The notes under the pieces: generated by a model
Seen by the model: the letters and a program-made list of their open reading frames with translations, nothing else
Databases searched by the model: none
What the model was told of the DNA's origin: nothing
Assembly (NCBI GenBank): GCA_002269645.1
Contig: NIVC01004534.1
Span: forward strand, 1-42,906
DNA: 42,906 nt
Reading direction: 5' to 3'
Origin: Macrostomum lignano
Taxonomy: Eukaryota
Made by a program: the position numbers and the translations under genes
In this document: positions 3,662 through 41,147 of the stretch, in pieces
Numbering within the stretch: the stretch's first letter is position 1
How the letters are laid out: the number at the start of each line of letters is the position of its first letter

Positions 3662-3698
3662 AGAATCGGCCTGGGGCAGTGGGTGACTGAAGAATCGG
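3651..3698. repeat. Stub (~1.7 units) of the 29-bp minisatellite, left of the LINE
   Basis: GGGTGACTGAAGAATCGGCCTGGGGCAGTGGGTGACTGAAGAATCGG is the same unit as the 5011-5790 array. Confidence 0.9.
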
Positions 3699-7993: not shown

Positions 7994-8183
7994 TTACTCA
8001 TTGGCCATGCTGGGCTCATGACTGTGGCTGCTCTGGCTGCCCGGTCTGGGACTAATTGACCTCAGCAGGTCCTCGCCATTGTCAGCCAGAGATTGGTCGT
8101 CCGGTGTTAAGTCGACAAAATCGCTGCCTAAATCGCTGCGCGCCTGATGCGGCCCCTGGCGCTTAGATTTGGTCGGCCGATCC
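7994..8183 (-). CDS. MYH10-like: Myosin exon 21, non-helical tailpiece and stop (alternative in-frame acceptor at 8207)
   Basis: ctgtctcgcag|G GAT CGG completes the phase-2 Arg codon and gives DRPTKSKRQ...[20 protein letters not shown]...MANE*. Confidence 0.7.
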
Positions 8184-13565: not shown

Positions 13566-13600
<35 letters not shown>

Positions 13601-13601
13601 T

Positions 13602-13645
<44 letters not shown>

Positions 13646-13646
13646 T

Positions 13647-13684
<38 letters not shown>

Positions 13685-16600: not shown

Positions 16601-19600
16601 GCCTTCTCGGAGGTCTGCCTGGCCCGCCGACCGGCCTCCAGCTGTTCCTGCAGTTCCACGATTGCCCGGGCATGGCGCTGCTTGGCCTCAGCTAGCTGGG
16701 TCTCCTTGGCGGCCTGCTCCGCTTCGAGGGCCGTTTTTAGTGCCAGCATCTCTTCGTTGCGTCGACGATTGAGCTCCTGCTGGACATTGTTGGAATCCTG
16801 CTGATCCTCAAATTCCAGTTTGAGAGCTTCCAGCTCTTCGCTTAGGTCGCGTTTCTGCTTCTCGGCTCGGTCTCTGCGGGGTTGGGGAAGATAGTGACAG
16901 GTGGGGAAGATGGTGACGGATGGGGAAGATGGTGACGGATGGGGAAGATGGTGACAGATGAGGAAGATGGTGACAGATGGGGAAGATGTTGACAGGTGAG
17001 TGACTGTGTGGGGAAGATGGTCACTGGTGAGTGACTGGGTGGCGAAGATGGTGACTGGTGAGTGACTGGGTGGCGAAGATGGTGACTGGTGAGTGACTGG
17101 GTGGCGAAGATGGTGACTGGTGAGTGAATGGGTGGCGAAGATGGTGACTGGTGAGTGACTGTGTGGGGAAGATGGTGACTGGTGAGTGACTGTGTGGGGA
17201 AGATGGTGACAGGTGAGTGACAGTAGATAAAGACAGGTGGGCGTGATAAAGATGACAAGAAAGTTTCAACACGTCCAGTTACAAAGAATAATACAACAAT
17301 CAAGCTCGGACAGCTTAAAGTCTCACCGAGCGGCCCGTTCAACATCCAAATCCTCGAGCAGCTCGCTGTTTTTAACCTCAAGATCGCGGGCCGACTTCTG
17401 GGCCAGGCCGCGCGCTGCCGCCTCCTCGTCTGCCCGCGACTGCAGCCGCTGCAGCTCCTCCTCTAGGCGGGCGCACTGGGCCTGCTGCTCCGCCTGACGG
17501 CTGGTCGCCTCCTCGAGTTCCTCGGTGCGCTCGGCCAACTCCGATTCCAGACGCCGTTTGGCTCGTTCGAAGTCCTTAAGAAAACACAGGGGCAATTGGT
17601 GAAACAGCCAAGTTCAAATTTATTAGCAACTTCGCTCACCTGTCGCGAATCCTTTTCATGCTGCAGGCGCTCTTCCAGCTCTTTGATGATGCTCTCGTGC
17701 TTGGCCTTCAGCTTGGCCAGTGTCCGGCCGCGCTCCTCCTCCTCGGCCAGGTCGGAGCTGATCTCCGACAGCTGCTCTTCTAGCGAGCGCTTCTCAACTG
17801 CCAGCTTATGTGACTGGTCGTCTAGGCTGGCCGTGCGCGACTCCAGCTCGCGTACGCGCGCCTCAAGGGCCAACTTCTCCATCTGCGGGGAAAGGGGCCG
17901 GAATATGAGGATCTGGGAGGCTGGCTGCTCAGTCTGAGGATCTGGGAGGCTGGCTGCTCAGCCTGAGGATCTGGGAGGCTGGCTGCTCAGCCTGAGGATC
18001 TGGGAGGCTGGCTGCTCAGTCTGAGGATCTGAGAGGCTGGCTGCTCAGCCTGAGGATCTGGGAGGCTGGCTGCTCAGTCTGAGGATCTGAGAGGCTGGCT
18101 GCTCAGCCTGAGGATCTGGGAGGCTGGCTGCTCAGCCTGAGGATCTGGGAGGCTGGCTGCTCAGCCTGAGAATCTGGGAGGCTGGCTGCTCAGCCTGAGG
18201 ATCTGGGAGGCTGGCTGCTCAGTCTGAGGATCTGGGAGGCTGGCTGCTCAGCCTGAGGATCTGGGAGGCTGGCTGCTCAGTCTGAAGATCTGGGAGGCTG
18301 GCTGCTCAGCCTGAGGATCTGGGAGGCTGGCTGCTCAGTCTGAGGATCTGAGAGGCTGGCTGCTCAGCCTGAGGATCTGGGGCTGCTCAGTCTGAGGATC
18401 TGGGGCTGCTCAGTCTGAAGATCTGGGGCTGCTCAGTCTGAAGATCTGGGAGGCTGGCTGCTCAGCCGGAGGATTAGCCATTTTACGCAAAAACTTCCAT
18501 AACAAGCGCGTCTACAAACCTGCGCCTTCTGCTTGGCTTCCTCGGATGCTTCAAGCTGCTCCTCCGTGTCGGCCAGCAGCTGCTGCCCGGCCCGCCGCTC
18601 GCTCTCCAGCCGGCCGCATTTGGCGTATTCTTCTTCTAGTTGCAGGCGCAGCTCCTCTAGCAGAGCGGAAAGCTCGGCAGATTTGGCGCTTAACTTCTCC
18701 CTGGCGTCCTCGGCCTCGGCCAGGCTGTCCCGCTCCCGCTGCAGTTCGTCACGCATAGCGTGGCTCTCGGCAGACAGCTGCGCATAGGACTGCTTGTAGT
18801 CGGCCAGCTCGGTAGCGGCCCGGTCCCCGGCCTCGCGCAGTTGACGGATCTCGGCGTCCTTGGCCTGCACCACCTCCTCCTGGCGAGTCACCTACGGGCG
18901 CGGAGGACGCGGAGAGAGGTTTTGACTGGGTTGGATTGCATATGCTACTGGTTGTGATGGAACTTAGAGTTTCATTTAGATACAAATGATACGATGGTTT
19001 TAAACGGTTGCGGTAGGTTTACATGGGTTTCTGTGGGTTTCAACCGCTCCCGTGAAATTAAACAGGTTCTAGTGGGTTCATATTGGTTCTCGTGGGTTCA
19101 GATCGGTTCTGGTGGGCTCATATCGGTTCTAGTGGGTTCATACTGGTTCTCGTGGGTTCATATCAGCCCTAGTGGGTTCATACTGGTTCTCGTGGGTTCA
19201 TATCAGTCCTAGTGGGTTCATATAGGTTCTAGTGGGTATCGTTTCTAGTGGGTTCATACTGTATCTGTTCTAGTGGGTTCATATCGGTCCTAGTGGGTTC
19301 AGATGGGTTCTAGTGGGTTCACATTAGTTAGTGACTTAATCAGCACTTAAAAGACAAGGCAGAGACAAAAGTACATCACTCACCTGAAGCAGAGGCCTGA
19401 CTTTGGTGTAGAGGCGCCACCAGGCCCAGTTGCGCAATCGCAGATAGGCGGTGCAATTGCGCTGGATAACCCGGCTAGCGTTGGACTGTTGGATGCGTTT
19501 CTGGCAGGCTCGGCGGGCCAGGAAGCCGCGGGCGCAAGCCTGCAATGTGCGGCGGGCCAGGCCGTTGAAATAGTAAATAGTTTTGAGCGCTGTAGGACCA

Positions 19601-22600
19601 GTTAATGCATGACTGAGCGCCATATTGAGTGTTGTCGGGGCGCCATATTGTGTTATTGAGGCGCCATATTGAGCGTTGTTGGGGCGCCATATTGAGTGTT
19701 GTTGGGGCGCCATATTGAGTGTTGTTGGGGCGCCATATTGAGTGTTGTCGGGGTGCCATATTGAGTGTTGTTGGGGCGCCATATTGTGTTATTGAGGCGC
19801 CATAATGAGCGTTGTTGGGGCGCCATATTGAGTGTTGTTGGGGCGCCATATTGAGTGTTGTTGGGGCGCCATATTGTGTTATTGAGGCACCATAATGAGC
19901 GTTGTTGGGGCGCCATATTGAGTGTTGTTGGGGCGCCATATTGTGTTATTGAGGCACCATAATGAGCGTTGTTGGGGCGCCATATTGAGTGTTGTTGGGG
20001 CGCCATATTGAGTGTTGTTGGGGCGCCATATTGAGTGTTGTTGGGGCGCCATATTGAGTGTTGTCGGGGCGCCATGTTGTGTTATTGAGGCGTCATATTG
20101 AGTGTTGTTGGGGCGCCATATTGAGTGTTGTTGGGGCGCCATATTGAGTGTTGTTGGGGCGTCATATTGAGTGTTGTCGGGGCGCATATTGAGTGTTGTC
20201 GGGGCGCCATATTGAGTGTTTTTGAGGTGCCACATTGCGTTTCGAGGCGCCACATTGAGTGTCAAGGCGCCAATTTCGAGGCGCCACATTGAGTGTCAAG
20301 GCGCCAATTTCGAGGCGCCACACTGAGTGTCAAGGCGCCAATTTCGAGGCGCCACATTGAGTGTCGAGGCGCCTAATTAAGTGTCAAAGAGCAAACTGAG
20401 CATTGAGCCAATCTTGGCGGTCAAGCTTACCGCACCAGTAAGATCGCATAAAACATTCATAAATTCCAGACTAAAGGAGCACACATCCCAGGCAAGACTC
20501 ACCTGAAAGCCGACAATATATTCGGCCAGTCGTTTGTCCCGCTCCTCCTCAAGGAAGGCGACTACCCCGGCCCGGAAGAACACTTTGCTCTGGCCAATAC
20601 GGTAGAGCGTCGAGTCTAATTCCAGACTGCGGACCATTCGTTCAACAGCCTGCCGACCGTCCATAAAGCCTTTGGGTATGGCGCCAGGGCATAGAATCTC
20701 GTAGCGCTGCTTGAACTCGTGAAATAGAATCCTATTCGGGTAGCCTTGGCGACAGATCCGGATGCCTTCCAGTACGCCGTTGCAGCGCAGCTGCTCCAGC
20801 ACAAGCACACTGTCCAAGCGGCCAGCCCGTTTCTCGTGGTTCGGTATGATGCAGCGAACAAAATTAGGCGATGTATTGTTCAACACGGACATCAGCCTGG
20901 CTAGCTGCTCTTTGTAAAGCTGGCCGACTGTCCTGAACATGCCCTTCTTGGTGCGCTGACCGAACACAGTCTCGCTGGCTGCCTGAGCTGCCAGGCCAAC
21001 AACATTATCAACACCTTTCCACAGGCTCGCAACAAACTGATCGGACGAATTTTGCAACACGGCTACGACATTCTCATTGAGCGGATCCTGATTCTTCTGT
21101 AGCCAGTTGTCGGCTGAGTAATCCACTCTGCCGGCGTAGTGAAGAACGGAGAAACCGTTGATTGCGCTTTTCTTTAAACTGGCCTTAGCGAATTTCGGGT
21201 GCTGGTCGAAATTTCTCTGCAGCTTCTCAACGAAGCTCTTATCCGTAGCCTTGGGGAACCAGCACTCTTCGTCTAGGATGGCGAAGATGCCCATCTGTTG
21301 CTTGTCAATCATTGGCGTCTTCTCAATCAGATCGATGGTTGGCTGCAAGTCCAAACCAAAGTCGATGAATTTCCATTCGATGCCCTCTTTCTGGTACTCC
21401 TCCTGTTCCAGGATGAACATCGTGTGGTTAAACAGCTGCTGCAGCTTCTCGTTAGTGTAGTTAATGCACAGCTGTTCGAAACTATTCAGCTCGAATATTT
21501 CAAAGCCGGCAATGTCCAGGATGCCAATAAAGTGAGCACTTTGACGAGCTTTGCTGCGGTCCAATGACCGATTGATTCTGGTCACTAGCCAGCGGAACAG
21601 CCTCTCGTAGATGGCCTTGGAGATGGCTTCAACGGCGAACACTGCCTGTTCTTGGCTCTGCGATTTGTTAACAAACTCGCGGCCTACGCGAATGCGCGGC
21701 CTGAGGAAGGCGCGTACGAGATCGTTGACCTGCAGGCCGAGCAGGTGGCAGGCCTTCTGGGCCACTGGCCGGGGCGTGTTGGGTTGGAAGAGAGGCTCGA
21801 GATGAATTTTTATGTAGTTTGATGCATTCACTGTAAGTGACCGATACAAGCACCCTAGAGTCACTTGCAGGTAACACAGGTAAAATAGGAATTCAGTGAC
21901 TCTAGAAGACTCTAAAACTACGAAATTTCACGCTTCAAATCGCCAAAAAGTCATCAAAGGGTCGCTTAGGAGTCAATTTGAGGCGTTTTTTGTCTGCCTC
22001 TGAGTCGTATCTGAGGCGTGCTGGAGTCGCTGCAGAATCACTGAGTTTTGTGTCTAAAGCGCATCTGCGTCACTTTATGAATTAGAATCGCATTTCGCAG
22101 CCGCATAACTTTATTAGTCTACTTGAGTTAGTAGAGAATTAGGCGCTAACACAACGACTCTTGGATAACTTTTTGAGACTCTTTTACGATTCTGCAACTC
22201 ACGTGATGCGCTCGTGACTCAGTAGTCAACTCTCCGTCGCATTGCACTCGTTTGAGTCGTTAAAAAGTCACAAGAGTCACCAAAGAGTCGCTAGAGTCAC
22301 TAGTGAGTTGTCACGGTGACGGTTTCAACGGGGGAGGGCAGCTGCCGCCCTAGTGAAATTTGGGATTACTATTGCTTAACTACAATGGGGTCGGAGCCAT
22401 CCAGGGAAGGTCAAGAGGGTCAACTGCCCCTTCCCCTTTTTAGTGACAAAAGATGCTCAGGACAAAATTTCGCTTGCAGCGGTATAGTGGCACTAAAATC
22501 CAGCGCTTAAAAGTCGGTCACTGACAGTTGGGATGCAAAAATATAAAGCGCCTCATCTCACCCGAGCTGTCAGGCATGCTGGCCTGGTCGGCATTCCTGT

Positions 22601-25600
22601 CCTGCTTGAACACCATCGAGCCCAACTGTAGGACGGCGCTGATGACGCGAAATATGGCTGCAATTGTGCGCATGAACTAGCAGATTTTACCGATTGATTT
22701 CGCATTAGCCTACTGAGATAATTAGTGTAAATAGAGGGCAGAAAGTATAACTGTTTAGAATACTTGGCTAGTTTTAATATTTATCACTCGATACTTATAT
22801 ATGAACGATATAGATGCTCAGTGCTCTAAAAGAATGAGTCATGCGCATTAAAATTTTCATGTTGAAGCAAACCCGAAGGGAAATCGAAAGAATTCCTCGC
22901 AGATTACTGAGATTTGAAGCCTTTCCTAGAACTCGGTGCAAGATGGAAGACATAAAAATGCATAGCGGCATAAATCAATATATCTGAACTCTAAGGGTGC
23001 CCAGTCTGTACATGTAAATCCTATCACTCAATCTTACCGAAGTCTATGATGAATCTACCGAAGTCTATGATGAATCTACCGAAGTCTATGATGAATCTAC
23101 CGAAGTCCATAATAAACCTACCGAAGTCTATGATGAATCTACCGAAGTCTATGATGAATCTACCGAAGTCTATGATGAATCTACCGAAGTCTATGATGAA
23201 TCTACCGAAGTCTATGATGAATCTACCGAAGTCTATGATGAATCTACCGAAGTCTATGATGAATCTACCGAAGTCTATGATGAATCTACCGAAGTCTATG
23301 ATGAATCTACCGAAGTCTATGATGAATCTACCGAAGTCCAAATTAAACCTACCGAAGTCCATGATAAACCTACCGAAGTCTATTATTAACCTACCGAAGT
23401 CCATGATAAACCTACTGAATTATATGATAAATCTACCTAAATCGTTGATGAACATACTGTAGACAGACAATAAACCTACTGAAGACAAACGATAAACCTA
23501 CTGAAGAAAAACGATAAACCTACTGAAGTCAAACGATAAACCTACTGAAGACAAACGATATAAACCTACTGAAGACAAACGATAAACCTACTGAAGACAA
23601 ACGATAAACCTACCGAAGACAAACGATAAACCTACCGAAGACAAACGATAAACCTACTGAAGACAAACGATAAACCTACCGAAGACAAACGATAAACCTA
23701 CCGAAGACAAACGATAAACCTACCGAAGACAAACGATAAACCTACCGAAGACAACCCCTCTCAAAGCAGCTGCAGTTTCGGCCAACTTACAAACTCGCTC
23801 CTCCTGAGCGATGCCCATGATGTCCATGGCCTGCAGAGTCTCTTCAAACGCGGCATTATCGTCAACTCCAGGGACGGGCAGCTGACCGTTGCTCAAATAC
23901 TTATAAGCTGACGGCTGCTCAAGCAATAGCTGACTGCGCAGGTCCTCATCGCGGCTTGACAAAAGCTGATAGAATATGTGAAAGCAGCGCTCGTCCTTTG
24001 CTTGTTGAATAACTCGCGCCTTTTCTAGCAGGTCTACGTAGTTGCGTTAGTTTGTTACCATGGCGATGTAAGGAATATAGACCGATTGATTTGAATTAAA
24101 AGAATATCATAATTATCAAGTGTATAACTGATAGTCATTATCATATGCATTCCGGATACCGCTAGGATAATCATCATGACGGGCATTACTCATATAATCA
24201 TGAGAGGCATCAATCGAATAATCATCATGACGGGCATCACTCGGAAAATCATCATCATAGGCATCACTCGGATAATAATCATGACGGGCATTACTCGGAA
24301 AATCATCATGATAGGCATCACTCGGATAATCATCATGATAGGCATCACTCGGATAATCATCACGATAGGCATCACTCGGATAATCATCATGATAGGCATC
24401 ACTCGGATAATCGTCATGACAGAAATCACTCGGATAATCATCATGACAGAAATCACTCGGATAATCATCATGATAGGCATCACTCAGATAATCATCATGA
24501 TAGGCATCACTCGGATAATCATCACGATAGGCATCACTCGGATAATCATCATGATAGGCATCACTCGGATAATCGTCATGACAGAAATCACTCGGATAAT
24601 CATCATGACAGAAATCACTCGGATAATCATCATGACAGAAATCACTCGGATAAATCATCACGATAGGCATCACTCGGATAATAATCATGATAGGCATCAC
24701 TCGGATAATAATCATGATAGGCATCACTCGAATAATCGTCATGACAGAAATCACTCGGATAATCATCATGATAGGCATCACTCGGATAATAATCATCACG
24801 CGCATCACTCGGATAATCATCATGATAGGCATCACTCGAATAATCGTCATGACAGAAATCACTCGGATAATCATCATGATAGGCATCACTCGGATAATAA
24901 TCATGACGCGCATCACTCGGATAATCATCATGATAGGCATCACTCGAATAATCGTCATGACAGAAATCACTCGGATAATCATCATGATAGGCATCACTCG
25001 GATAATAATCATGACGCGCATCACTCGGATAATCATCATGATAGGCATCACTCGAATAATCGTCATGACAGAAATCACTCGGATAATCATCATGATAGGC
25101 ATCACTCGGATAATCATCATGATAGGCATCACTCGGATAATCATCATGATAGGCATCACTCGGATAATCATCATGATAGGCATCACTCGGATAATAATCA
25201 TGACGCGCATCACTCGGATAATCATCATGATAGGCATCACTCGAATAATCGTCATGACAGAAATCACTCGGATAATCATCATGATAGGCATCACTCGGAT
25301 AATCATCAAGATAGGCATCACTCGGATAATCATCATGATAGGCATCACTCGGATAATCATCATGATAGGCATCACTCGGATAATCATCAAGATAGGCATC
25401 ACTCGGATAATCATCATGATAGGCATCACTCGGATAATCATCAAGATTGGCATCACTCGAATAATCGTCATGACAGAAATCACTCGGATAATCATCATGA
25501 TAGGCATCACTCGGATAATCATCAAGATAGGCATCACTCGGATAATCATCATGATAGGCATCACTCGGATAATCATCAAGATAGGCATCACTCGAATAAT

Positions 25601-28600
25601 CGTCAAGATAGGCATCACTCGGATAAATCATCACGATGTGCACTGCAAAATACGCAGGGGCATACCAAAGAAAGACCCACTCGAGAGAGAATGGAAAACT
25701 GATTTAGGTTCGATTTTACTCCTAAACGATACAGAACCTTCCTGCGTATCAACCTCGAATTTGACCATCAGCCATAAATACCTTTACAAAAGCTTCAAAG
25801 CTGACAATACTTTAATAATTTTTTCCAAATCCGAGTTGCATAAAAGATTGACAGTCAGAACGCCACGCTGTCTCATCTCCCTATGGAAAATCAATAAACA
25901 GTTTGTCAGCGCGAACGGATAGAGAGTGGATGAGGTCCCGGCGACTTCAATGATAAACACACCCAAAGAAATGAAACAGCTAAACGCACGCGGAGTTCTA
26001 AAGTACACCGGGAACCGTGTGCTAGCGGAATACAAACATCGTTTTCAGATCTAACGTGGGATAAGGAATTTTAGAAAGATTTACGTCTAAGAACAGAAAT
26101 AATAAATTCGATCACTGAGCGCTGAGGGCCATTGCCACGAATTTCAGGGCTAAGCCTTTTTAAACCCTTTAAAACCTGCTTATAATCAATTTTACGATTG
26201 CAGGAGATTATAAATATAAGAATTGATTAATTAGCTAGGAACGGCTGAATTTTGAAATATCCCCTAACCCTATGCCGTACATGTATATGGATGGTACAGG
26301 CTTGTAAAACTAAGGTTGTGGAAATGGTCTGCCTCCCCCTTCCCCTAGCAACCATCTCTCTCTCTCCTTCCACTAACTTCCTTGTAAATATTTTCAAGCC
26401 CCATTGGACCCGGACTAGCTAGTAGTGTATGACAGTCCCCCCCTCCCAAGGACAACAGGCGGCCCACAGGCACACCTGGAATGGAGCGCTACAACCAATA
26501 GCGAAGAGAAAACGTCACTCTAAAAAAAGTTCAAAACCGAAATCGCGAATTCCGGCATAGTGCGGCTGCAGAGCTATTAAAGGTCGCCAATACGTCTTCC
26601 GTTGCGTATTCTTGGCATTTTTGCCAATTCGCGGAGGCAAACTACAGTATATCCTCTCCTCTAGGAAAATCTGGATATTAGTATTAAACATTAGAAAACT
26701 GTCCACTCTTGTAGCCAAGCATATAAGCATTGAATACCAGCCAGGAAAGACAGAAGAGCAGCAGAATTCCGGATGCCCAACTTAGTGAACTAATATTGTG
26801 TCACGTGTGACTGACTATATATGGCAACTAGCCTGAATCTGCGAATAGGCCCTACGACTAGTTGAATTTCCATAGCTATAAATAAACGCATCATTTCAGT
26901 TAGCTGCCGCGCCACAAAAATTAGTTCTGCACATAGCAGTGCGCGTGGAATGCTTTTGGTCACACCATGACAAATAGTTGGTAAACATCTGGTTGAAGAG
27001 AAAGTCCAGATGGATAGATCAGCTATGGCGAACGTGTTGCAGCAGCTGTTTTAAAACTTTTCCTTTTCCTAGCGCAGAAAAAAACTACGAGAAGCTGATT
27101 TGACGACTATTTGCTTTAGGAAAACTGAGAGCTTTTACATTTCCCTATAGGCCAGAAAAATAGCTTCCTATTGCACTAACTAATAGATTCTACCGATGCG
27201 TGTGACTAATGGAATTGAAAAACTTTTAACAAACACATTACTTTTTCCTGTGTTTGCACCGAAAAAAGTTACCAGAAAGAATGCATCTATTAGTTAAAGC
27301 TTTTCACCTGCGTTATGCATCAGGCTAAAAACCCTGGCCTCTATTTAGTTCAGAATAAATAGCGCAGGGATTTTTAAACTACGAATAGCTTTACCCAAGT
27401 GGACCACAAGTTTAATCACATGTGATTGGAACTGTAACTGGAACTGGAACTGTCACGTTACAGTTCCTGCTGCAATCACAGCACAAGTCCAATCACATTT
27501 TACAGTTCCTGCTGCAATCACAGCACAAGTCCAATCACATTTTACAGTTCCTGCTGCAATCACAGCACAAGTCCAATCACATTTTACAGTTCCTGCTGCA
27601 ATCACAGCACAAGTCCAATCACATTTTACAGTTCCTGCTGCAATCACAGCACAAGTCCAATCACATTTTACAGTTCCTGCTGCAATCACAGCACAAGTCC
27701 AATCACATTTTACAGTTCCTGCTGCAATCACAGCACAAGTCCAATCACATTTTACAGTTCCTGCTGCAATCACAGCACAAGTCCAATCACATTTTACAGT
27801 TCCTGCTGCAATCACAGCACAAGTTAATCACATTTTACAGTTCCTGCTTTAGTTTAAAATGATCAATATTCAATTATCTGTGTTCAATATTTCAATGATA
27901 AAGTAAGCGAGTCTATGAACAAGAGAAGGAAATGCAACAAATTAGGAACTTTTCAGCCAAAGGCATACAAAAATATCTCCACACATGGCATAGGTCTAGC
28001 AGACAGTTAAACAGCAACTAGGACTAAAAGCAGAAGAAAGGCATGACTAATTATTCTGACTTGTGGGAAGGGGTTGGTGCACAGACGAGGTCGAGATTAG
28101 GAAATTCAGAACGAAGCTGGGCCAAAATCTTTCCAGACCGAAGAGAGAGAGAGGGGTGATGAAGGTTACCTGAGGGAGGTTGCCGCCTACCAACTTGTGG
28201 ATCTCCTGTGTACCCACCCCCGACCCTTCAGGATCCACCTACTAATTCCCATATTGCTGCACCATTACCAAGGCGGTACTGCCCTCCGTTATGCTCTCCT
28301 GTCTGTCAGGTCTATCCATACACCGGTACAGCCTTCCTTTCGGAGGGTATCCCTTCGGGATAAGTAAGAATGAACGTTAAGAAAGGGGGGCAGACAGGCA
28401 GAGAGAGGAGAGCGGGAAGAAACTGGACTAGCTAAAGATACAGCATGCCGCAGACAGGAAATGTGCCAATATACTCGACTGAACATTACAATGCGATAAT
28501 GCAATACCTAACAGAACGCTAGCTAACGCCTATCTAATCTAGCTGGCTGATGAAGTCCTACTTTAAAAAATTCGGGAAGGATGATTTAGTAAGCGCCAGG

Positions 28601-28887
28601 ACTGGCAGACAGACTGGCAGACTGAGTGCAACTCCTCGGTAGCTTGCTGACTCCCTTAAGGGTTGTCAGCCAATTCAGAGGCGTTTTAGTGACAAAGTGA
28701 TTTCAGCTAGACGGTAACAACTTTTGGGAATAATAATTGGAAACTGCACTGAGTGAGTCATCCCTCAGTCCATTGTGGCTTAGAATATCCACACATACTA
28801 GACAATGACATTTTTTTCTAATGCTAAAACTTAACTAGCAGAGAAAGCCAACCAATAAGATAAAGATCTCGATTAGCAAAAAAGATA

Positions 28888-28983
<96 letters not shown>

Positions 28984-29005
28984 CTAGATGGATAGATAGA
29001 TAGAT

Positions 29006-29053
<48 letters not shown>

Positions 29054-29103
29054 GGATAGATAGATAGATAGATAGATACATAGATAGATAGATAGATAGA
29101 TAT

Positions 29104-29160
<57 letters not shown>

Positions 29161-29412
29161 CAGGCACAAAAAGAAACTGACACCTCACAAGGATAAGCAA
29201 GCCATTTAGTGTCCTAGCAGATTCACAAAAATGAGGTGTTGATCGCCCCAGAAACAGAGCAAACCAAACCAACACGGCTTAGAAGACGACAGAAACAGAA
29301 ACGACTAGCTAGGCAAAGGTGCTGCGGTCCTCTCCCCAGTAACTTCATTCTTTTATGGTAGACAAGCAAGCAAGGACGCAGCAACAGCAGAAGCAACAGT
29401 CCTTCAGCATTA

Positions 29413-29480
<68 letters not shown>

Positions 29481-30048
29481 GGCAAAATTCTTTCATTGCC
29501 ATTCGGTCGCGCAGACCCTTATCCCCCTATCTACAGGCCCGTTTCGGCCTCGGGCATGGCGCTTCATCCACTCGACCGGGGGGGGGGGGGCTCTTCCATG
29601 AAATTTCGCCATCCCGTGGCCGAACCAGCGCTCGCTCATTCCGTCTTTCTCTCTCTTGCAGCATTTGGAAAATAAGTGCATTCGGGACACAGACTGGCAG
29701 TGTGAGAGAGGCAAAGTGGCCGGCTGCGATTGGGAATAATAATAATAATAGAACAAAACTTAACGCTCTTATAGCTGGCCACAATAATTTTATTAAAAGT
29801 TATCATATAGAAAAGGATACAAGTCTCGATATTGGCGCCAGCGATGAAGCCAGTGGTATCAAAGTTGATGCGAATAAACTTGCCCTAAAAAGTAATTGAA
29901 TAATTGCAAGCAAAAATTTCATCTTAAAACTAGTTTATTAAGCCTGGCTATAAAGTACAGAATGAATTATACTTCAAGAGAGAATAAAGTGGCCAAAGAA
30001 ATCTAAGATGCTACCCCATGAAACGCCCGACCACAAGCAAATCCTACC

Positions 30049-30096
<48 letters not shown>

Positions 30097-30189
30097 GACT
30101 AACTAACTAACTAACTGACTAACTAACTAACTAAATAACAAACTAACTAACTAACTAACTGACTAACTAACTAACTGACTAACTAACTG

Positions 30190-30232
<43 letters not shown>

Positions 30233-30249
30233 GACTAACTGACTAACTG

Positions 30250-30292
<43 letters not shown>

Positions 30293-30309
30293 GACTAACT
30301 AACTAACTG

Positions 30310-30364
<55 letters not shown>

Positions 30365-30441
30365 GACTAACTAACTAACTGACTGACTAACTAACTGACT
30401 GACTGACTGACTGACTAACTAACTAACTAACTGACTGACTG

Positions 30442-30472
<31 letters not shown>

Positions 30473-30509
30473 GACTGACTAACTAACTAACTGACTAACT
30501 AACTAACTG

Positions 30510-30548
<39 letters not shown>

Positions 30549-30625
30549 GACTAACTAACTAACTGACTGACTAACTAACTGACTGACTGACTGACTGACT
30601 AACTAACTAACTAACTGACTGACTG

Positions 30626-30656
<31 letters not shown>

Positions 30657-30677
30657 GACTGACTAACTAACTAACTG

Positions 30678-30756
<79 letters not shown>

Positions 30757-33700
30757 GACTGACTGAAAAGATACACATACAGCGCGCATGTGGGTGCAAC
30801 ACGGAATGATTTGGCTGAAGGCGTTGCTCTATGGTGAACGCTGAGGAGTTGCTTTTACACACGCGAAATGTCACTATAGCTAAATCACCTAATTTCATAA
30901 ACGCTAAGTTTCATAAACGCAAAACTTCACAACCGCTAATTTTTTACATTCACTTTCATAAATGCGAAACTTGCGGTTGTGAATGTATGAATGTAGGGGT
31001 GACCTTTAGCGGTTGTGAAGTTTCGCGTTTGTGAACCCCCCTCTCCATAAGCTGAGCCAGATTAACCAAGAACCATAAACCAGAAAGCAGCAAACGGAAC
31101 AAAGGAAACTTGATAAAAAAGACTTACAAATCTAGAAGAATTGTCGTTCTTGATAGTTTTAGCATTGCCGAATGCCTCCAGTATCGGATTGGCTTGCAGC
31201 AGTTGCAGCTCCAATTCGCCCTTGAAGATTAAAATGTTGAATTAAGAGATTAACACAAGTTAGCATTCGTATACTCTGACCGAAGGACTGAAAGTACTAA
31301 CCGCAGCCAATTGTGCTTAACTAGCAGGCTAAAAGTTATTATTATTTATTTTTGTCAAAGGCTTAATCGAAAAAAATCATCATTAGTTTATTGCAGTGCA
31401 CACAATCACAGGAATTAATAATTAGTGTAGTTAATTAAACATTGCTATTGGTATTGCGAAGTAATGGAAAAATCAAATTACAAACAGCCCTCACAGAAGT
31501 TGCCGTTGTTGTATCGAGATTCGAGACGTAACAACAACAACTTCCAAATGATCCTTGAAAAATGCGAATCAATGAATAAGTATACAGTTACCAAATAGAC
31601 ATTAGAAAACTGGACACCAAGAAGATAGTGTAATAAGCTTTTCTATACACTATATAGTAGATTAAATTTAATACCATCAATGCTGCGTCTCTTATGACGG
31701 CGTCACTTTCAAATGGCAAATTATCTGAAAATAATTAATTTTACTAATCTTAAAACTCGTTTAACAGTAGGAATACCAAGCCATTTTTCCGCCCGTAGAA
31801 CTACCAAGAGGGGGAATCCCCCTCTGACAATTTTTTTTGCTGCGCCGGAACGGAGCAACACAGGCACACGAAATTCAAGAACACGGGCTAACTTTTTGTT
31901 GCGCACCTTCTCAAACAAGAATCAAGTCGCCAGCCCTTCGGACCGTCGAGATATTCGACGATTCTGCCAGAAGGTCGGATTCTTCCCATAAGTGCTAGTG
32001 TATTCAGTACACCCCTGTGCGCCAATTAGCACTGCGCCTCACTGCAGCCTTGCCAAGTCTCCAAATTTCATCAGCACGTCGAACACATGTGTCTGCATCA
32101 GTTCTGACTTCGTTGGTCACTAGCCTTCACCCAAGTGGAGCTTCTGGACCCTCAACAGCTGTGGCACCAGGTGACTATGGACACCCTGATGCGGATTTCT
32201 CTAGTTTCGCCGATCAAGCCTCGACAGTGGGCAAGAATCAACCGCCAGACATTCTCAGCTAGTCTCTCAAGCATTCCGTCATCATCCCGACGCCGTCGGC
32301 TCCTTCAACAGATGCCACCTGTTGAAGGTGCCGACGGCTAGTGACCAACGAAGTCAGAACTGATGCAGACACATGTGTTCGACGAGCTGATGAAATTTGG
32401 AGGCTTGGCAAGGCTGCACTGAGGCGCAGTGCTGATTGGCGCACAGGGGTGTGCTGAATACACTAGCGCTTATGGGAAAAATCCGACCTTCTGGCAGAAT
32501 CGTCTAATATCTCGACGGTCCGAAGGGCTGGCGACTTGATTCTTGTTTGAGAAGGTGCGCAACAAAAAGTTAGCCCGTGTTCTTGAATTTCGTGTGCCTG
32601 CGTTGCTCCGTTCCGGCGCAGCAAAAAAATTGTCAGAGGGGGGGGGAATTTCCCCCCCCCCTCTTGGTAGTTCTACTGTTAATTATTTAAAGCCGGGCTC
32701 AAATAATAAGAGGGCAAACTAAATTGAAGCTGCTATAAACTCTAGCATAAAGGCGCGCACACAGGAAACTTAATAAATAAAAAATCTATACTAATAAATA
32801 ATTATGCAGGCGCATTCTTGAAAACAAGTTCTACACAGTTGCGAACAACTTACAATATTGACGGCCTTAACCTGGAAAAATTAATTATATACATACAATT
32901 CAAGCCAACCTAACCAAAGGCGGTTCACACAAGTATACAATACAAGACGGCTGCAATCTACTAGCCTAGCTAGCCGCTAGCGGACAAATTAAAGCTGGGG
33001 TCGGTGAACTTTTTACCGCAAGGGCCAGATTAAGAATCCAGCTCATGACTGCGGGCCAGATGAGAGTGGAAAGGAGAGGGAATGAGGGAGAGAGGAGAGA
33101 GGTGACAAAAGAGAGGGGAGGTAAGATGCGAGATGAAAGAGGCCAGGAAAGAAGAGATGAGTGAGAGGAAGATAAGAGGAAAGGAGAGGAGAGGAGAGGA
33201 AAGGAGAGAAGAGGAGGTGAGAGGGAAGAAGAGATGAGATGAGAGAGTAGAGTAGAGGAGCTGAGAGGAGAGGAGAGAGGAGAGGAGAGGAAAGAGATGA
33301 GAGGAGATAACTGGGAAGAGATAAACCTTGAGCGGGCCGGATTGCCATTCTGAGGTGTCCAAGGACTCGAGGGCCCGATAGAGGCTTTGCGGCCCGCGGG
33401 CCGGAGTTCTCCTACCCATGAATTAAAGCGACAACTCACCTGCGACTGAGCAATGGAATTAGTGGCTGGCGTTGAGCCGCCGGTTTTCTGCGATTTGACA
33501 GACGAGGCTACGTGGGCCAGGTACTGAATGACCTTCTTTGTGTTTTCAGTTTTGCCTGCGCCGGATTCGCCTCTGTGTCGAATTTGGAATGGATTGAATA
33601 CAGCCAATGCTTTGCCCCATCCAAGCTTTTAATTTTAAGCTGGGGATAAACTATATGCACTTCCTTTTCGATAACTGAGTCGAATGAAAGTGCGATAGGG

Positions 33701-33783
33701 GCAGGCAGGCAAGACAGGAAGGTAAAGAGATACATATAGACAGTTAGAGACGCTACCGCAGAGACCGACAGGCACAGACAGGC

Positions 33784-33834
<51 letters not shown>

Positions 33835-33873
33835 TAGACAGACAGACACACAGACAGACAGACAGACAGACAC

Positions 33874-33924
<51 letters not shown>

Positions 33925-34069
33925 CACAGAAAGACAGACAGACAGACAGACAGACGCTAAGTCAGACAGACACTAAGTCAGACAGACACTAAGACAGACA
34001 GACAGACAGACAGATAGACAGAGACAGACAGACACTAAGTCAGACAGACACTAAATCAGACAGACACTA

Positions 34070-34126
<57 letters not shown>

Positions 34127-34133
34127 CACAGAC

Positions 34134-34198
<65 letters not shown>

Positions 34199-34255
34199 CA
34201 CAGACAGACAGGCAGACACACAGGCAGACACACAGACAGACAGACAGACAGACAC

Positions 34256-34290
<35 letters not shown>

Positions 34291-37121
34291 TACAGACAGA
34301 GAGACAGACAGACAGACAGACAGAGAGACAGACAGAAAGACAGACAGACAGACAGACAGACAGAGACAGACAGACAGACACACAGAAAGACAGACAGACA
34401 CGCAGCCAGAGAGTCTGATTGATTGACCAAGAGTTTGATGCCAGAAGTGTCAGAAAAGTTGCCAGTTGCCACCAGCGCACACAACAGCAAGCCTTACGTG
34501 CACAGGATGCTCTGATCATCGCGAGCTTCCAGCATAGACCGGTAGGCCTGATCGGCGATAGCATAAATGTGTGGCGGCCGTTCCGATCGCTTTTTCCCTT
34601 TGTAGGCTTCAATCACGGGCTCGTTATAGATTGGCAGCCGCTTGTAGGGATTGACCACTACGCAGAACAGGCCTGAGTAGGTCTACAATAGCATTTTGGG
34701 TAGATTTAAAAAAAATTCATTTTTAATAAACGGTAGAAACAATGCATTGCATTGGCAAGTTGCTACAGAAAAAGTACTTTTCATTACTGCGCACACCGCC
34801 TTTGGAGGGATGAGAAATAATCTAGTGTGAAAGAAAACATAATACTTCTTAATTTTTTACCATTTTTCTACACTGCACTGCACTGCTTTTATTAACACAT
34901 TCATCTTATTTACATTGGCTAGTTTTTCTGCCCTTTGTCTTAAATGTTAAGTCAACAAAATGTGTAGAAATAACCACATAAAATTTCTACATTCTTGTAG
35001 ACACATCAGGGTTATTTTGCAACATTTTTAAAACTATAAACTCGAATACTGTAGCTCCTTCGGGATTGACACTTGGCTTTGCAGATCCACAGAGAATCGG
35101 GTTATCAAACCAGACAAAAATCATAAAATAATCTTAGATTGACATACTATATTTAAATAACTATTTCTAGTTTTAGATAGTTTAGAGGTAGGACACTGTA
35201 TGTACCTTGGCATACTTTAGGGGACATTTATCCCATAATTAGCAAGAGGCATTATTTCCCATTTTGTTGACTCCCCTGAGTAGACAGATAAGTGTGCAGA
35301 TAATATAGTCATATATATAAGCACACACTGACATAGTATATAGTGGCATTGTATACATAGTATACATAGTATTTTTTATTATGCATTGGAGATTGGCCCT
35401 TAAAGGTGTTAATAGCATGATCAGACCCAAGCTAAGATTCCAATTTAGCCTTAAATTAATATGATTGCACTAGGAATTAAACCTCTTATTGGCATATGAG
35501 ATCACCAAGCAAGACCATTAGACTATGGCTCCCTTTTATTAGAAGAATCTATAAATAATTGTGTTTATTTATTGTATTGCTAACTGCTAAAAGACCATTG
35601 ATATAATTTTAATTGAAAATTAATTGTAAAATAATTATTTTATTTTTATTTTCATTATTAGCTAAGACAATAAATAATTTTGTTTTTACTACTTTTTTAA
35701 ATGATATACTTCTTATAGATCAATTCAAAAAGAGACCTAATTCTTCAGGCTTTAAAGAATAAATTATTATGCTTCATTTATTAGCACCACGATTAATATA
35801 TTGATTTATATTATATCAGATTAGATTAATATATATTATACATAGTTAATAAATAATTTTTATTGTTTAAAATGGTTTTCAAGCTATAAAATTTAAGTTG
35901 GCCCAGAAACATTGTTATTAGAAATTGAAGTTTTTGTGTTTAAGGCTAGTCATTAACTTTTATTGTAATTATTTAAAAAAAGTAATTTAAAAAATTGATT
36001 TTAAAAAATTGATTTTTGAATTGTAAAAGTTCTAGACTATAGTAGGCCCCCTATAATTGTCAAGGAAACCTTATTAGAATCAATCTAAAAATTTACAAAC
36101 ACTCATTCTAATCTAAGCATAAAAGAATGCAAGTAAAGGTAAATATTTATACTATAAAGTATTAGTTTGGAATTTGATTATAAAATTTCAAATTGTATTC
36201 TAGGCTTTTTACTAGGCATAATTTTATATAAAGCATTTGTTTTTAACAATTTTATAAAAGTATATGCATCTCATACTTGCTGGTTTGGCCTTATTATACA
36301 AAGGTTGTACAAATGGAAATCAATTGGTATACAAGCACGACAATAGATTTCCTGCCTCACATTTAAGACAATATTTTTATAAATCCCTTTTGCCTTTAAT
36401 CTATTTATATAATAAAATATAAAAAAAATAAATCTAAAATTCGAATGAAATAATTTTTTTTCTGCAACAAATTGTTTTTACTACCGGGGCTAATTTATGA
36501 GTTTTTATTGTGAATATGCAGTAAGACAACATTAATATATATATATTTTAAAAGATATATATTCTTTATATAATTGAAAACAATAAATTAAAAATAAATA
36601 ATCTTTTAATTCAATTATTTTAAAAGTCTAAATTAAGCCAAGAACATATTCGGGTTTTGGATGCACTTTTGCAGATAGGATCAAATATAAAAATGTGATT
36701 TTTAATTTTTGAATGATATTCACACAAAAAACTTAGGCCCAAATATTGTCTAAAAACTTACATAAATAAGATCAGAATAGTATCTGTCACGAAGGTTGTG
36801 AAGAACAGATGCTTCGTTTAGGTTTGACAGTTCCGACATGTCCTCCTTCTTCGTAAACTTAGGAGGATTCATTTTTTGTATATCATCCTTGGAAACTTTT
36901 CGAGTTTCACCAGTATCAGAAACCTCAACAATAACAACATCGTCTCCCTCTTCTTGCCGAACACTAGCGGAAACAAAACCCTGAGTCTCATGTGGGATCC
37001 AAACTAGTTTTTTCGCAACCCATTCCTGCTCAAGAGAGGGGTCACTAATTATGCTGTTTGTGCCAGAAACTTCAAGAAATTTGAAGGCCGGATCTTTCTG
37101 CAATAGATCGACGGACATCAT
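7994..37121 (-). CDS. MYH10-like: Myosin II heavy chain, non-muscle/smooth type (MYH9/MYH10/zipper-like), 21 coding exons, ~2010 aa
   Basis: Exons (minus): 37121-36762, 34682-34498, 33572-33440, 31220-31128, 29884-29821, 24033-23791, 22657-22562, 21764-20503, 19539-19384, 18891-18520, 17882-17640, 17574-17327, 16873-16270, 16014-15784, 15621-15422, 15161-14900, 14215-13886, 13416-13195, 12926-12606, 11624-11407, 8183-7994. All junctions are GT-AG and phase-compatible; total 6033 nt. Motifs: P-loop GESGAGKT, switch I NDNSSRF, switch [26 protein letters not shown] region, [17 protein letters not shown], long heptad rod and acidic tailpiece. Confidence 0.96.
8279..9004. repeat. 44-bp minisatellite, ~16 copies
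   Basis: Unit TTGGATTGCTA(A/G)TCTA(G/A)CTCTCACTGACGAGTCTATAGATGAG(A/G). Confidence 0.97.
9575..10522. repeat. 29/31-bp minisatellite GGGGAGTGGCGGT(C/T)ACACAC(AG)AAACACACT, with a 60-bp dimer
   Basis: The lines starting 9601, 9661, 9721 and 9781 are nearly identical at a 60-bp period; this explains several repetitive ORFs. Confidence 0.97.
10905..11335. repeat. Purine-rich (GGAGA-type) low-complexity tract
   Basis: Almost only A/G on the plus strand; intronic. Confidence 0.9.
11407..11624 (-). CDS. MYH10-like: Myosin exon 20 (end of rod)
   Basis: cag|GTT GAC GAC GAG ([11 protein letters not shown]...VLRKQNQ) to CG|gtgagt. Confidence 0.92.
11850..12430. repeat. TTAGTGTCTGTC-type 12-bp repeat with a 69-bp higher-order unit
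   Basis: TGCCTTATTGTCTTTTAGG recurs at 12081, 12150 and 12219. Confidence 0.92.
12606..12926 (-). CDS. MYH10-like: Myosin exon 19 (rod)
   Basis: cag|[23 protein letters not shown]...VKELQQQ|gtgtg, 321 nt. Confidence 0.93.
13195..13416 (-). CDS. MYH10-like: Myosin exon 18 (rod)
   Basis: cag|[16 protein letters not shown]...EESAQ|gtttga, 222 nt. Confidence 0.92.
13515..13858. repeat. (CTA)n trinucleotide microsatellite with CTG/TTA/CAA variants
   Basis: Direct reading; source of the poly-S, poly-L and poly-V ORFs. Confidence 0.97.
13886..14215 (-). CDS. MYH10-like: Myosin exon 17 (rod)
   Basis: tag|[20 protein letters not shown]...VTHYK|gtttgt, 330 nt. Confidence 0.93.
14272..14878. repeat. 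19-bp minisatellite ATGGGGATCAGC(CCAAGT/GCACCT/CCAAAT), with a 57-bp trimer
   Basis: ATGGGG at 19-bp spacing (14469, 14488, 14507), with variants cycling in threes. Confidence 0.96.
14900..15161 (-). CDS. MYH10-like: Myosin exon 16 (rod)
   Basis: cag|A GAA CGC GAG ([10 protein letters not shown]...EDARLRLE)|gtttgt, 262 nt. Confidence 0.93.
15232..15420. repeat. (GACA)n/(GACACA)n microsatellite
   Basis: Direct reading; fills most of the intron between exons 15 and 16. Confidence 0.96.
15422..15621 (-). CDS. MYH10-like: Myosin exon 15 (rod)
   Basis: cag|[20 protein letters not shown]...RHKKFD...TVEA AG|gtctgt, 200 nt. Confidence 0.92.
15784..16014 (-). CDS. MYH10-like: Myosin exon 14 (rod)
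   Basis: aacag|[21 protein letters not shown]...RLEEAQ|gtgcgg, 231 nt. Confidence 0.9.
16270..16873 (-). CDS. MYH10-like: Myosin exon 13 (rod)
   Basis: cag|A GAC CGA ([23 protein letters not shown]...[11 protein letters not shown])|gtgcgc, 604 nt. Confidence 0.94.
16882..17220. repeat. GGGGAAGATGGTGAC-core minisatellite (~19-bp and ~30-bp units)
   Basis: Direct tandem copies inside the exon 12-13 intron. Confidence 0.93.
17327..17574 (-). CDS. MYH10-like: Myosin exon 12 (rod)
   Basis: aag|[13 protein letters not shown]...[12 protein letters not shown]|gtgaga, 248 nt; the preceding intron is 65 nt. Confidence 0.93.
17640..17882 (-). CDS. MYH10-like: Myosin exon 11 (rod)
   Basis: cag|[14 protein letters not shown]...[27 protein letters not shown]|gtgagc, 243 nt. 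Confidence 0.94.
17905..18468. repeat. 29-bp minisatellite CTGAGGATCTGGGAGGCTGGCTGCTCAG(C/T), ~19 copies
   Basis: Direct tandem copies; shortened 21-bp units at the right end. Confidence 0.97.
18520..18891 (-). CDS. MYH10-like: Myosin exon 10 (start of rod, S2)
   Basis: tag|[15 protein letters not shown]...EEAKQKAQ|gtttgt, 372 nt. Confidence 0.94.
19065..19325. repeat. 20-bp minisatellite GGGTTCATA(T/C)(C/T)GGTTCT(A/C)GT
   Basis: Direct tandem copies. Confidence 0.92.
19384..19539 (-). CDS. MYH10-like: Myosin exon 9 (IQ motifs/neck)
   Basis: cag|[15 protein letters not shown]...[28 protein letters not shown]|gtgagt, 156 nt. Confidence 0.95.
19617..20372. repeat. 23/19-bp minisatellite GGGGCGCCATATTG(AG)TGTT(GTT/ATT)
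   Basis: Direct tandem copies with a shared GGCGCCA core, degrading at the right end. Confidence 0.96.
20503..21764 (-). CDS. MYH10-like: Myosin exon 8 (bulk of motor domain: switch II, relay, actin-binding region, converter)
   Basis: cag|TG GCC CAG AAG through [33 protein letters not shown] and [23 protein letters not shown] to IVGFQ|gtgagt, 1262 nt. Confidence 0.97.
21855..22301. mobile_element. Possible MITE-like element rich in GAGTC/GACTC motifs, with short inverted ends
   Basis: AGTGACTCTAG at 21895-21905 is inverted relative to CTAGAGTCACT at 21855-21865 and 22291-22301. No target-site duplication could be assigned. Confidence 0.35.
22562..22657 (-). CDS. MYH10-like: Myosin exon 7 (motor)
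   Basis: cag|CC ATA TTT CGC ([31 protein letters not shown]) G|gtgaga, 96 nt. Confidence 0.94.
23034..23753. repeat. Two adjoining related minisatellites: 21-bp CTACCGAAGTCTATGATGAAT (23034-23445) and 22-bp CCTAC(T/C)GAAGACAAACGATAAA (23470-23753)
   Basis: Direct tandem copies sharing a CTAC(C/T)GAAG core. Confidence 0.96.
23791..24033 (-). CDS. MYH10-like: Myosin exon 6 (motor)
   Basis: cgtag|AC CTG CTA GAA AAG ([25 protein letters not shown]...[12 protein letters not shown]) T|gtaagt, 243 nt. Confidence 0.95.
24165..25630. repeat. 27-bp minisatellite CATCACTCGGATAATCATCATGATAGG, ~1.45 kb
   Basis: Direct tandem copies with recurring variant units; source of 330-500 aa repetitive ORFs. Confidence 0.97.
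27455..27845. repeat. 42-bp minisatellite TTACAGTTCCTGCTGCAATCACAGCACAAGTCCAATCACATT, ~9 copies
   Basis: Near-identical tandem copies (14-aa period in the ORF track). Confidence 0.97.
28888..29161. repeat. (GATA)n microsatellite
   Basis: Direct reading. Confidence 0.98.
29414..29478. repeat. (AC)n microsatellite
   Basis: Direct reading. Confidence 0.98.
29821..29884 (-). CDS. MYH10-like: Myosin exon 5 (motor)
   Basis: tttttag|[22 protein letters not shown]|gtatcctttt, 64 nt. Confidence 0.95.
30050..30766. repeat. (ACTA)n/(ACTG)n compound microsatellite, ~715 bp
   Basis: Direct reading. Confidence 0.98.
30910..31035. repeat. Short inverted repeat (30-bp arms), possible small MITE remnant
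   Basis: TTCATAAACGCAAAACTTCACAACCGCTAA (30910-30939) pairs with TTAGCGGTTGTGAAGTTTCGCGTTTGTGAA (31006-31035), with 2 differences. Confidence 0.75.
31128..31220 (-). CDS. MYH10-like: Myosin exon 4 (switch I)
   Basis: caag|[31 protein letters not shown]|gtaagt, 93 nt. Confidence 0.96.
31765..32678. mobile_element. 914-bp non-autonomous foldback DNA element (MITE-like) with ~330-bp inverted arms, flanked by TTAA
   Basis: Arms 31795-32125 and 32336-32676 are reverse complements (9 substitutions counted by eye, plus G/C-run length differences). The ends read TTAA|CAGTAG...CTACTG|TTAA (TTAA at 31761-31764 and 32679-32682). Confidence 0.88.
32854..32871 (-). CDS. MYH10-like: Candidate 18-nt cassette microexon (VKAVNI) in myosin loop 1
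   Basis: aattaatttttccag|GTT AAG GCC GTC AAT ATT|gtaagt; symmetric phase 0, between exons 3 and 4. Confidence 0.65.
33060..33310. repeat. Purine-rich (GAGAG/GGAGA) low-complexity tract
   Basis: Direct reading. Confidence 0.88.
33440..33572 (-). CDS. MYH10-like: Myosin exon 3 (P-loop, loop 1)
   Basis: cacag|A GGC GAA TCC ([24 protein letters not shown]...IAQSQ)|gtgagt, 133 nt. Confidence 0.96.
33770..34400. repeat. (GACA)n microsatellite with interruptions
   Basis: Direct reading; source of the SVCL-repeat ORFs. Confidence 0.97.
34498..34682 (-). CDS. MYH10-like: Myosin exon 2 (motor)
   Basis: tgtag|[19 protein letters not shown]...[28 protein letters not shown]|gtaagg, 185 nt. Confidence 0.96.
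36762..37121 (-). CDS. MYH10-like: Myosin first coding exon (N-terminal SH3-like domain)
   Basis: ATG at 37121; [13 protein letters not shown]...[41 protein letters not shown]|gtaagt, 360 nt. Confidence 0.95.
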
Positions 37122-40575: not shown

Positions 40576-41147
40576 AAAGGGTTGTCTGACAAATTTTATC
40601 GGTTGCGTCTAAGTTGCCTACTTTCAGTAGAGAGTAGCAAACGTGGAACGTATATTTTTTACAAACATATTTACAATTGTAAAATAGATAAAGAAATTGT
40701 AGAAAATGGGAATATTTATCGTTTTAGTACCGAATAGTTCATTCTGTTATTCAATATTTACATGCTGAAACGATTAAGTCTGTAATATATGATTTTAGAA
40801 ATCGGCGAGTCCTAACCAAACCTAACGTTGCTAAACTTCGGTTATCAGACGAGAACCGGTTTTTTCAACGTGGTATGGCCAGTAGTACTTAACATCACTT
40901 TATGCTTCTCAACCCGCTGCATTATGCCAGGCCAGTTACAAGATGGCCAATTTTATTTGAAGCCCGTTTCGAATTGAACAACAGGTGATGAATCTGTCAA
41001 TCTTTAATTTAGCCTAGGAAATCATGCATGAAGCCTTTGCAAGGACTTTTCCGAGCCCTTGGGGTCTTGTCAAACTTTGGCTGGGAAAGCAACGTTGATG
41101 CTCAGCTCTTGCACTCAACTCTTCACCTCACACCAAGTGTGAGGTAT

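Follow-up and report, generated by a model that had tools for sequence, protein, structure and literature searches.

The stretch analysed here, 42,906 nt of contig NIVC01004534.1 from the flatworm Macrostomum lignano and called the window below, carries on its minus strand a class II myosin heavy chain gene of the non-muscle/smooth-muscle type, with an adjoining Hsp70 gene and with retroelement debris downstream of the myosin gene. The fifth intron of the myosin gene is our subject. It is very probably a GT-AG intron of the U12 type, removed by the minor spliceosome, and orthologous to an intron of vertebrate MYH9, MYH10 and MYH11 and of the non-muscle myosin II (NMII) gene of Schistosoma.

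The myosin gene and the junction of intron 5

The exons of the myosin gene were located by tblastn with database homologues, and GT-AG pairs that keep the reading frame were then chosen. For the tail exons a human MYH9 tail sequence was used only as a guide to exon positions, and the model built in this way was checked independently against solved myosin structures. The top match of the 2018-residue product is human Myosin-10 (9z3w_A), in a single stretch (residues 22-1962, 2015 bits), the next best are Myosin-9 and then Myosin-11, and the sarcomeric myosins follow at about 1200 bits. This single-stretch alignment to Myosin-10, and then to Myosin-9 and -11, means that the gene model is sound and that the gene is a myosin II of the non-muscle/smooth-muscle type. 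This agrees with the class, whose members have an SH3-like domain at the N terminus, then motor, IQ and a long coiled-coil tail, and the product is nearest to MYH9/10/11. Its only stop is the terminal one, and the coding sequence of 6057 nt is without any frameshift.

Intron 5 follows an exon of 64 nt, and the acceptor ahead of this exon is an ordinary U2-type site with polypyrimidine and AG (ctttttag|GGC). Splicing of exon 5 to exon 6 rebuilds IETY-LLEK, with the Tyr codon split as T|AC, and the alignment of the model to solved myosin-10, -9 and -11 has no gap across this junction. The intron begins with GTATCCTTTTCT and ends with ...tatTTCCTTACatcgccatggtaacaaaCTAACgcaactacgtAG, so that its 3' part has the layout TTCCTTAC-N34-AG. 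The coordinates of the gene and of the elements of the intron are given in the table.

The donor, GTATCCTTT at +1..+9, fits the U12 5' splice site consensus RTATCCTTT at nine of nine positions. Scored with U12 and U2 matrices that are our own approximations from the published consensus, and not the calibrated matrices of intronIC or MIDB, it reaches a U12/U2 log-odds of +13.7 bits, as compared to -11 to -25 bits for the other 19 donors of the gene. Its complementarity to U1, counted over CTT|GTATCC, is 4 of 9 positions as against 6-9 of 9 in the others, and the base at +5 is C in this intron alone and G in all 19 remaining donors. The latter read GTAAG, GTGAG, GTTTG, GTGCG, GTCTG or GTGTG, and none is similar to GTATCC. 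The sequence GTATCCTT occurs twice in both strands of the window together (85.8 kb). By sequence, the donor of intron 5 is a flawless 5' splice site of the U11 type that fits U1 very poorly. It is decisive by itself for a predicted U12 type, which the branch site is not. An earlier note on this DNA had claimed that the donor starts with GTATCC, unlike the 19 others, and that the conserved 64-nt exon forces it, with the split codon T|AC rebuilding IETYLLEK. The first claim was confirmed in an independently built model of 20 introns, where all 19 others have G at +5, and the second by our reading of exons and introns.

Table. Coordinates in the window of the myosin gene, of the elements of its intron 5 and of the tandem repeats in this intron
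Feature	Position	Strand	Remarks
Class II myosin heavy chain gene, non-muscle/smooth-muscle type, coding region	7994..37121	minus	21 coding exons, 20 introns, 2018 amino acids
Exon 5, 64 nt; encodes 21 amino acids and T (first base) of the Tyr codon	29821..29884	minus	homologous exon of equal length in five other genes
Intron 5, 5787 nt, phase 1, GT-AG, predicted U12-type	24034..29820	minus	gene model and junction reading
5' splice site GTATCCTTTTC after exon bases CTT (no A-2 G-1; T at -1 and -2)	29810..29820	minus	RTATCCTTT 9/9
Candidate U12 branch-site motif TTCCTTAC; A at 24069	24068..24075	minus	one base short of TTCCTTAAC
U2-like CTAAC; A at 24047, position -14	24046..24050	minus	consensus U2 branch site
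3' splice site TAG (YAG) without upstream polypyrimidine tract	24034..24036	minus	pyrimidine fraction 0.41
Exon 6; opens with AC of the Tyr codon, then CTG CTA GAA AAG	23791..24033	minus	gene model
27-bp minisatellite, 54.6 copies; ends 131 nt from the acceptor	24165..25637		intron 5; Tandem Repeats Finder (TRF)
42-bp tandem repeat, 9.3 copies	27458..27848		intron 5; TRF
(AGAT)n microsatellite, ~70 copies	28883..29160		intron 5; TRF
(CA)33 microsatellite	29414..29479		intron 5; TRF

The other 19 introns of the gene are 65-3199 nt long, which makes intron 5 the longest, and the shortest is intron 11 with just 65 nt (17639..17575). The U2-type donors (introns within 8208..36761) are odd at +3/+4, with GTTTG in 5 of 19, GTGCG in 2 of 19, and GTCTG and GTGTG in one each; the G at +5 is invariant (19/19) despite this variation.

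Orthologous introns in other animals

The junctions of homologous genes were read from their genomic loci. In five genes, four from vertebrates and one from Schistosoma, an exon that is also 64 nt long precedes a phase-1 intron, which splits the Tyr codon in the same way, starts with a GTATCC donor and has a U12-type branch site. The paralogue names rest on the best matches to solved structures (Myosin-9 for Prochilodus, Myosin-11 for Muraenolepis), and all branch distances were scripted except that of Characodon, which was counted by hand. MYH10 of the bird Cariama has the donor GTATCCTACC and the branch site TCCTTGAC with its A at -15, in an intron of 1635 nt, and MYH10 of the fish Characodon has GTATCCTGTG and TTCCTGAC with the A at about -15, in an intron of 209 nt. 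The MYH9-like gene of the fish Prochilodus has GTATCCTTCA and TCCTTAAC (A at -16, 875 nt), and the MYH11-like gene of the fish Muraenolepis GTATCCTAAC together with the same branch motif (A at -18, 467 nt). In the NMII-like gene of Schistosoma margrebowiei (locus L005, motif at about 5222..5230) the donor is GTATCCCTTT and the branch site TTCCTTAT, with the A at -12 in an intron of 643 nt. The branch-like motif is thus similar to TCCTTRAC in all five orthologues and is found 12-18 nt from the AG. GTATCC is kept in 6 of 6 sequences though it is non-coding, and the remaining intron sequence is unrelated and cannot be aligned. The genes of a dragonfly (Ladona), of a butterfly (Pararge) and of a rotifer (Adineta) lack the intron cleanly, and do not have it in converted form.

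Its position, at the same codon, and its signals make intron 5 the orthologue of the minor intron in vertebrate MYH9/MYH10/MYH11 and in Schistosoma NMII. Since the exon, the split codon and the GTATCC are identical in the orthologues, it is best regarded as an old U12-type intron, common at least to flatworms and vertebrates and deleted in some protostomes. The earlier note had put vertebrate MYH9, MYH10 and MYH11 forward as minor-intron genes, with the proposal to compare the position of the intron. The orthologue sequences bear this out, with the intron at the same position and in the same phase after an exon of equal length, and a preprint lists mouse Myh10 among genes that retain their minor intron when U11 is ablated. 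Intron 5 would be one more anchor for the antiquity of this minor intron, which would go back at least to the last ancestor that flatworms and vertebrates share, and its loss by precise deletion is documented in the insects and the rotifer.

The likeness to the vertebrate intron, which follows the exon encoding GKFIRINFD...IET, includes the 64-nt exon, the split Tyr codon, phase 1, the GT-AG termini, a GTATCC donor without G at -1 and the lack of a strong polypyrimidine tract. The vertebrate introns differ in their branch sites, which are TCCTTAAC, TCCTTGAC or TTCCTGAC each with its A 15-18 nt ahead of the AG, and in their length of 0.2-1.6 kb, whereas the Macrostomum intron has TTCCTTAC at 35 nt and is 5.8 kb long and laden with repeats. 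The Schistosoma intron, from the same phylum, has the same position, a GTATCC donor and also a single-A motif, TTCCTTATC, but its A is at -12, its length is 643 nt and its donor is GTATCCCTT, as compared to an A at -36, 5787 nt and GTATCCTTT in Macrostomum.

Both flatworm branch motifs, TTCCTTAC and TTCCTTATC, contain one A, and the vertebrate motifs contain two purines. A lineage-specific difference in the pairing of the U12 branch site between flatworms and vertebrates is possible. The single-A motif may be a flatworm trait, since it is found in Schistosoma too, and the long predicted distance from branch to acceptor is peculiar to Macrostomum.

The branch site and how the intron may be removed

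Removal by the minor spliceosome is supported by the nine of nine match of the donor, the YAG acceptor, the absence of A-2 G-1, phase 1 and not 0, and the missing polypyrimidine tract; the pyrimidine fraction at -20..-4 is tied lowest among the 20 introns. The absence of A-2 G-1 has been linked to true dependence on the minor spliceosome (PMC11347168), and in U12 introns, which have no polypyrimidine tract, 11-13 nt is the optimum spacing between branch and acceptor (PMC3584512). The donor GTATCCTT and the branch motif TTCCTTAC are each exactly at the place expected for a U12 intron, relative to a junction that is fixed by protein conservation. The branch motif occurs only once in both strands of the window (85.8 kb), and only 0.7% of random 51-nt windows drawn from this sequence hold a match within one edit of TTCCTTAAC. 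Looser patterns, the 8-mer core TCCTTAAC and the degenerate TTCCTTRAY, are matched by 1.7-1.8% of them.

Several properties of the branch region weigh against this reading. A24069 is 35 nt ahead of the last intron base (position -36) and so outside the optimum distance, though still within the -55..-5 region that intronIC scans. The motif TTCCTTAC is non-canonical, with one A and not two, and in theory UUCCUUAC might be paired with U12 along its whole length, so that no A would bulge. An approximate, ungapped 9-mer matrix gives it 3.6 bits, a score that 15% of random windows reach, and with the same matrix four ordinary introns of the gene outscore it. There is also a perfect U2-type CTAAC at -14. 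No significant structure was found when we looked for a hairpin that would shorten the spacer between branch and acceptor (minimum free energy -8.6 kcal/mol, z = -0.53). Because the ungapped score is unexceptional, a classifier based on position weight matrices might rate intron 5 as 'minor-like' or 'hybrid'. The earlier note had described a branch motif about 35 nt before the AG, one base short of the consensus, with a CTAAC also present, as a caveat on the branch site. The positions agree on every point, and the single A, the 35 nt and the CTAAC at -14 make the caveat justified.

In U12-dependent splicing the U11/U12 di-snRNP (small nuclear ribonucleoprotein) recognises donor and branch site together and cooperatively, and U6atac then displaces U11. 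The branch-site-binding sequence in the 5' region of U12 is GUAAGGAA, and the first suitable AG downstream of the branch serves as the 3' splice site. What was observed here is the anatomy of the sequence and its orthology, and the steps that follow are carried over to intron 5 from this established pathway. The di-snRNP would bind the donor GUAUCCUUU through U11 small nuclear RNA (snRNA) and its 5' splice site-binding protein, and jointly the UUCCUU of the branch motif through U12 snRNA, and exon definition across the 64-nt exon with its U2-type upstream acceptor probably assists. U4atac/U6atac.U5 would then enter, and U6atac would take the place of U11 on the UCCUU of the donor. It is most likely that the minor spliceosome removes the intron with branching at the single A of UUCCUUAC (24069). 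The 3' splice site would be the first downstream AG (24035-24034), and no other AG is present between TTCCTTAC and the acceptor.

It is conceivable, with a rather small probability, that intron 5 is a natural exception to the branch-site rules of U12 introns. Either the single-A, potentially fully paired UUCCUUAC would be used 35 nt out, about three times the optimum, or a donor defined by U11 would be joined to the CTAAC branch at -14, a true hybrid route. To our knowledge no mixed route with a U11 donor and a U2 branch is known, and CTAAC would pair with U12 at just about three positions (hand pairing). If the intron is such an exception, the single-A motif common with Schistosoma would suggest that recognition of the U12 branch site has been relaxed specifically in flatworms. 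The atypical branch site, with its single A, 35 nt and competing CTAAC, is a natural test case for the strictness of the U12 distance rule.

Another explanation, which we consider improbable, is that the intron is a hybrid or has been converted. The ancestral U12 branch site would have been lost, by deletion of an A and with about 22 extra nt before the acceptor, and the major spliceosome would remove the intron wholly or partly via the CTAAC at -14. This sequence agrees with the U2 branch-site consensus, the U12-type motif is degenerate, lies far from the acceptor and does not stand out by matrix, and 'minor-like' and 'hybrid' introns that escape dependence on the minor spliceosome are documented (PMC11347168). 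The U2-type donors of the gene are also fairly tolerant, as GTTTG is found in 5 of 19. The donor of intron 5 is however complementary to U1 at only 4 of 9 positions, lacks G at -1 and carries at +5 a C in place of the G of all 19 others, and a polypyrimidine tract is absent. A perfect GTATCCTTT would furthermore be unexpected if U11 had stopped reading the donor, and U11/U12 bind donor and branch site cooperatively.

The likeness to introns classified in this way can be made more precise. Intron 5 has, like the 'minor-like' and 'hybrid' classes of Olthof et al. 2024 (PMC11347168), a strong minor 5' splice site and a branch site that is weak by matrix, and like the minor-spliceosome-responsive subset of the same study it keeps the CC of the branch motif and has no A-2G-1. 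Those classes were set by calibrated matrices, whereas intron 5 was scored with approximate ones, and the responsive introns differ from it in having short branch-to-acceptor distances.

It is very unlikely that the branch site is truly a canonical TTCCTTAAC from which the assembly has dropped one A by error. Elsewhere in the window the Hsp70 gene does have three 1-nt deletions and no other defect, a pattern typical of long-read consensus errors. The myosin coding sequence of 6057 nt is free of frameshifts, which implies that the local rate of indel errors is very low and makes an artefactual loss of the second branch A unlikely. The Schistosoma motif TTCCTTATC also has a single A, and putting the A back would leave the distance of 35 nt unchanged. 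That intron 5 is an ordinary U2 intron with a chance likeness, or that another junction is used, is hardly credible: the junction was read from genomic sequence, but it is forced by the conserved 64-nt exon and the IETYLLEK motif, is aligned without gaps to solved myosin-10, -9 and -11 and recurs at the identical position with a GTATCC donor in five other genes of two phyla, which effectively refutes this explanation.

Growth of the intron, the minor spliceosome and the surroundings of the gene

TRF found four substantial arrays and a short (AAT)5 in intron 5, together about 38% of its length, and the reading frames inside it are only translated tandem repeats, so no nested genes were seen. 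It appears that the intron later grew to 5.8 kb through accumulation of these arrays. That it is ancient, retained and expanded with repeat arrays, as had been suggested, is supported by its length, the greatest among the introns of the gene, and by the share that tandem arrays have in it, 38%. Minor introns that are long have been described for lineages poor in them (Larue & Roy 2023, PMC10639083), and a minor intron of 5787 nt, as compared to 65-3199 nt for the others, resembles this. The published pattern was described mainly for insects. Long micro- and minisatellite arrays ((TAAC)n, (GTCT)n-like and trinucleotide runs) are found in nearly every larger intron of the myosin gene, for instance at 30040..30090, 33511..34449, 15214..15445 and 13477..13701, which fits a very repeat-rich genome.

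Among other flatworms, U11, U12, U4atac and U6atac are present in both schistosome genomes, and a pan-eukaryotic survey lists minor introns and snRNAs in Schistosoma. The planarian Schmidtea has the same four snRNAs, with recognition motifs that are conserved and aligned to those of other flatworms. Our literature search found no paper on U12 splicing in Macrostomum, and the supplements of the survey papers have no entry for Macrostomum or for MYH genes. An Rfam scan of the 43-kb window gave no minor snRNA, as expected at that size, and only a borderline 5S match.

A working minor spliceosome in Macrostomum lignano, as the earlier interpretation implied, is likely, and the perfectly kept GTATCCTTT points to it. 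The assumption is reasonable because GTATCC is kept in unconstrained positions and other flatworms have all four minor snRNAs. Intron 5 would then be indirect evidence for a working minor spliceosome in a regeneration model where RNA interference and transgenesis are available. It could also be a convenient endogenous reporter: its host is an essential cytoskeletal gene in which one minor intron follows an exon of 64 nt. On the sequence evidence the intron is the flatworm orthologue of the well-known U12-type intron of MYH9/10/11, and except for its odd branch site it is an ordinary, ancient feature. Nothing here should surprise a splicing specialist, and the appeal lies in the atypical branch site and in the value as a reporter in a tractable flatworm.

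The Hsp70 gene that adjoins the myosin gene (38414..40324, minus strand) encodes a protein with 98% identity to a UniProt entry of Macrostomum lignano, a match that assigns the window to this species or to a very close relative. Apart from three deletions of one base each, near 40277, 39637 and 39567, all of them shifting the frame, the gene is intact. The UniProt model translates a 5' flank that matches the flank in the window, and skips the deletion sites. The gene is either a very young pseudogene or carries local indel or consensus errors of the assembly. A few hundred bases upstream of it, the Rfam 5S_rRNA match (40784..40886, minus strand) scores 38.2 bits against a gathering threshold of 38, and may be a 5S gene that has diverged, a pseudogene or an element derived from 5S.

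The retroelement debris occupies 1..5808, downstream of the myosin gene. It includes a LINE-like C-terminal/RNase H reading frame at 4962..4288, a fragment of a Penelope-like reverse transcriptase at 964..452, whose only database relatives are 33-53% identical, and a tandem repeat of about 840 nt at 4966..5808 that is open in two frames.

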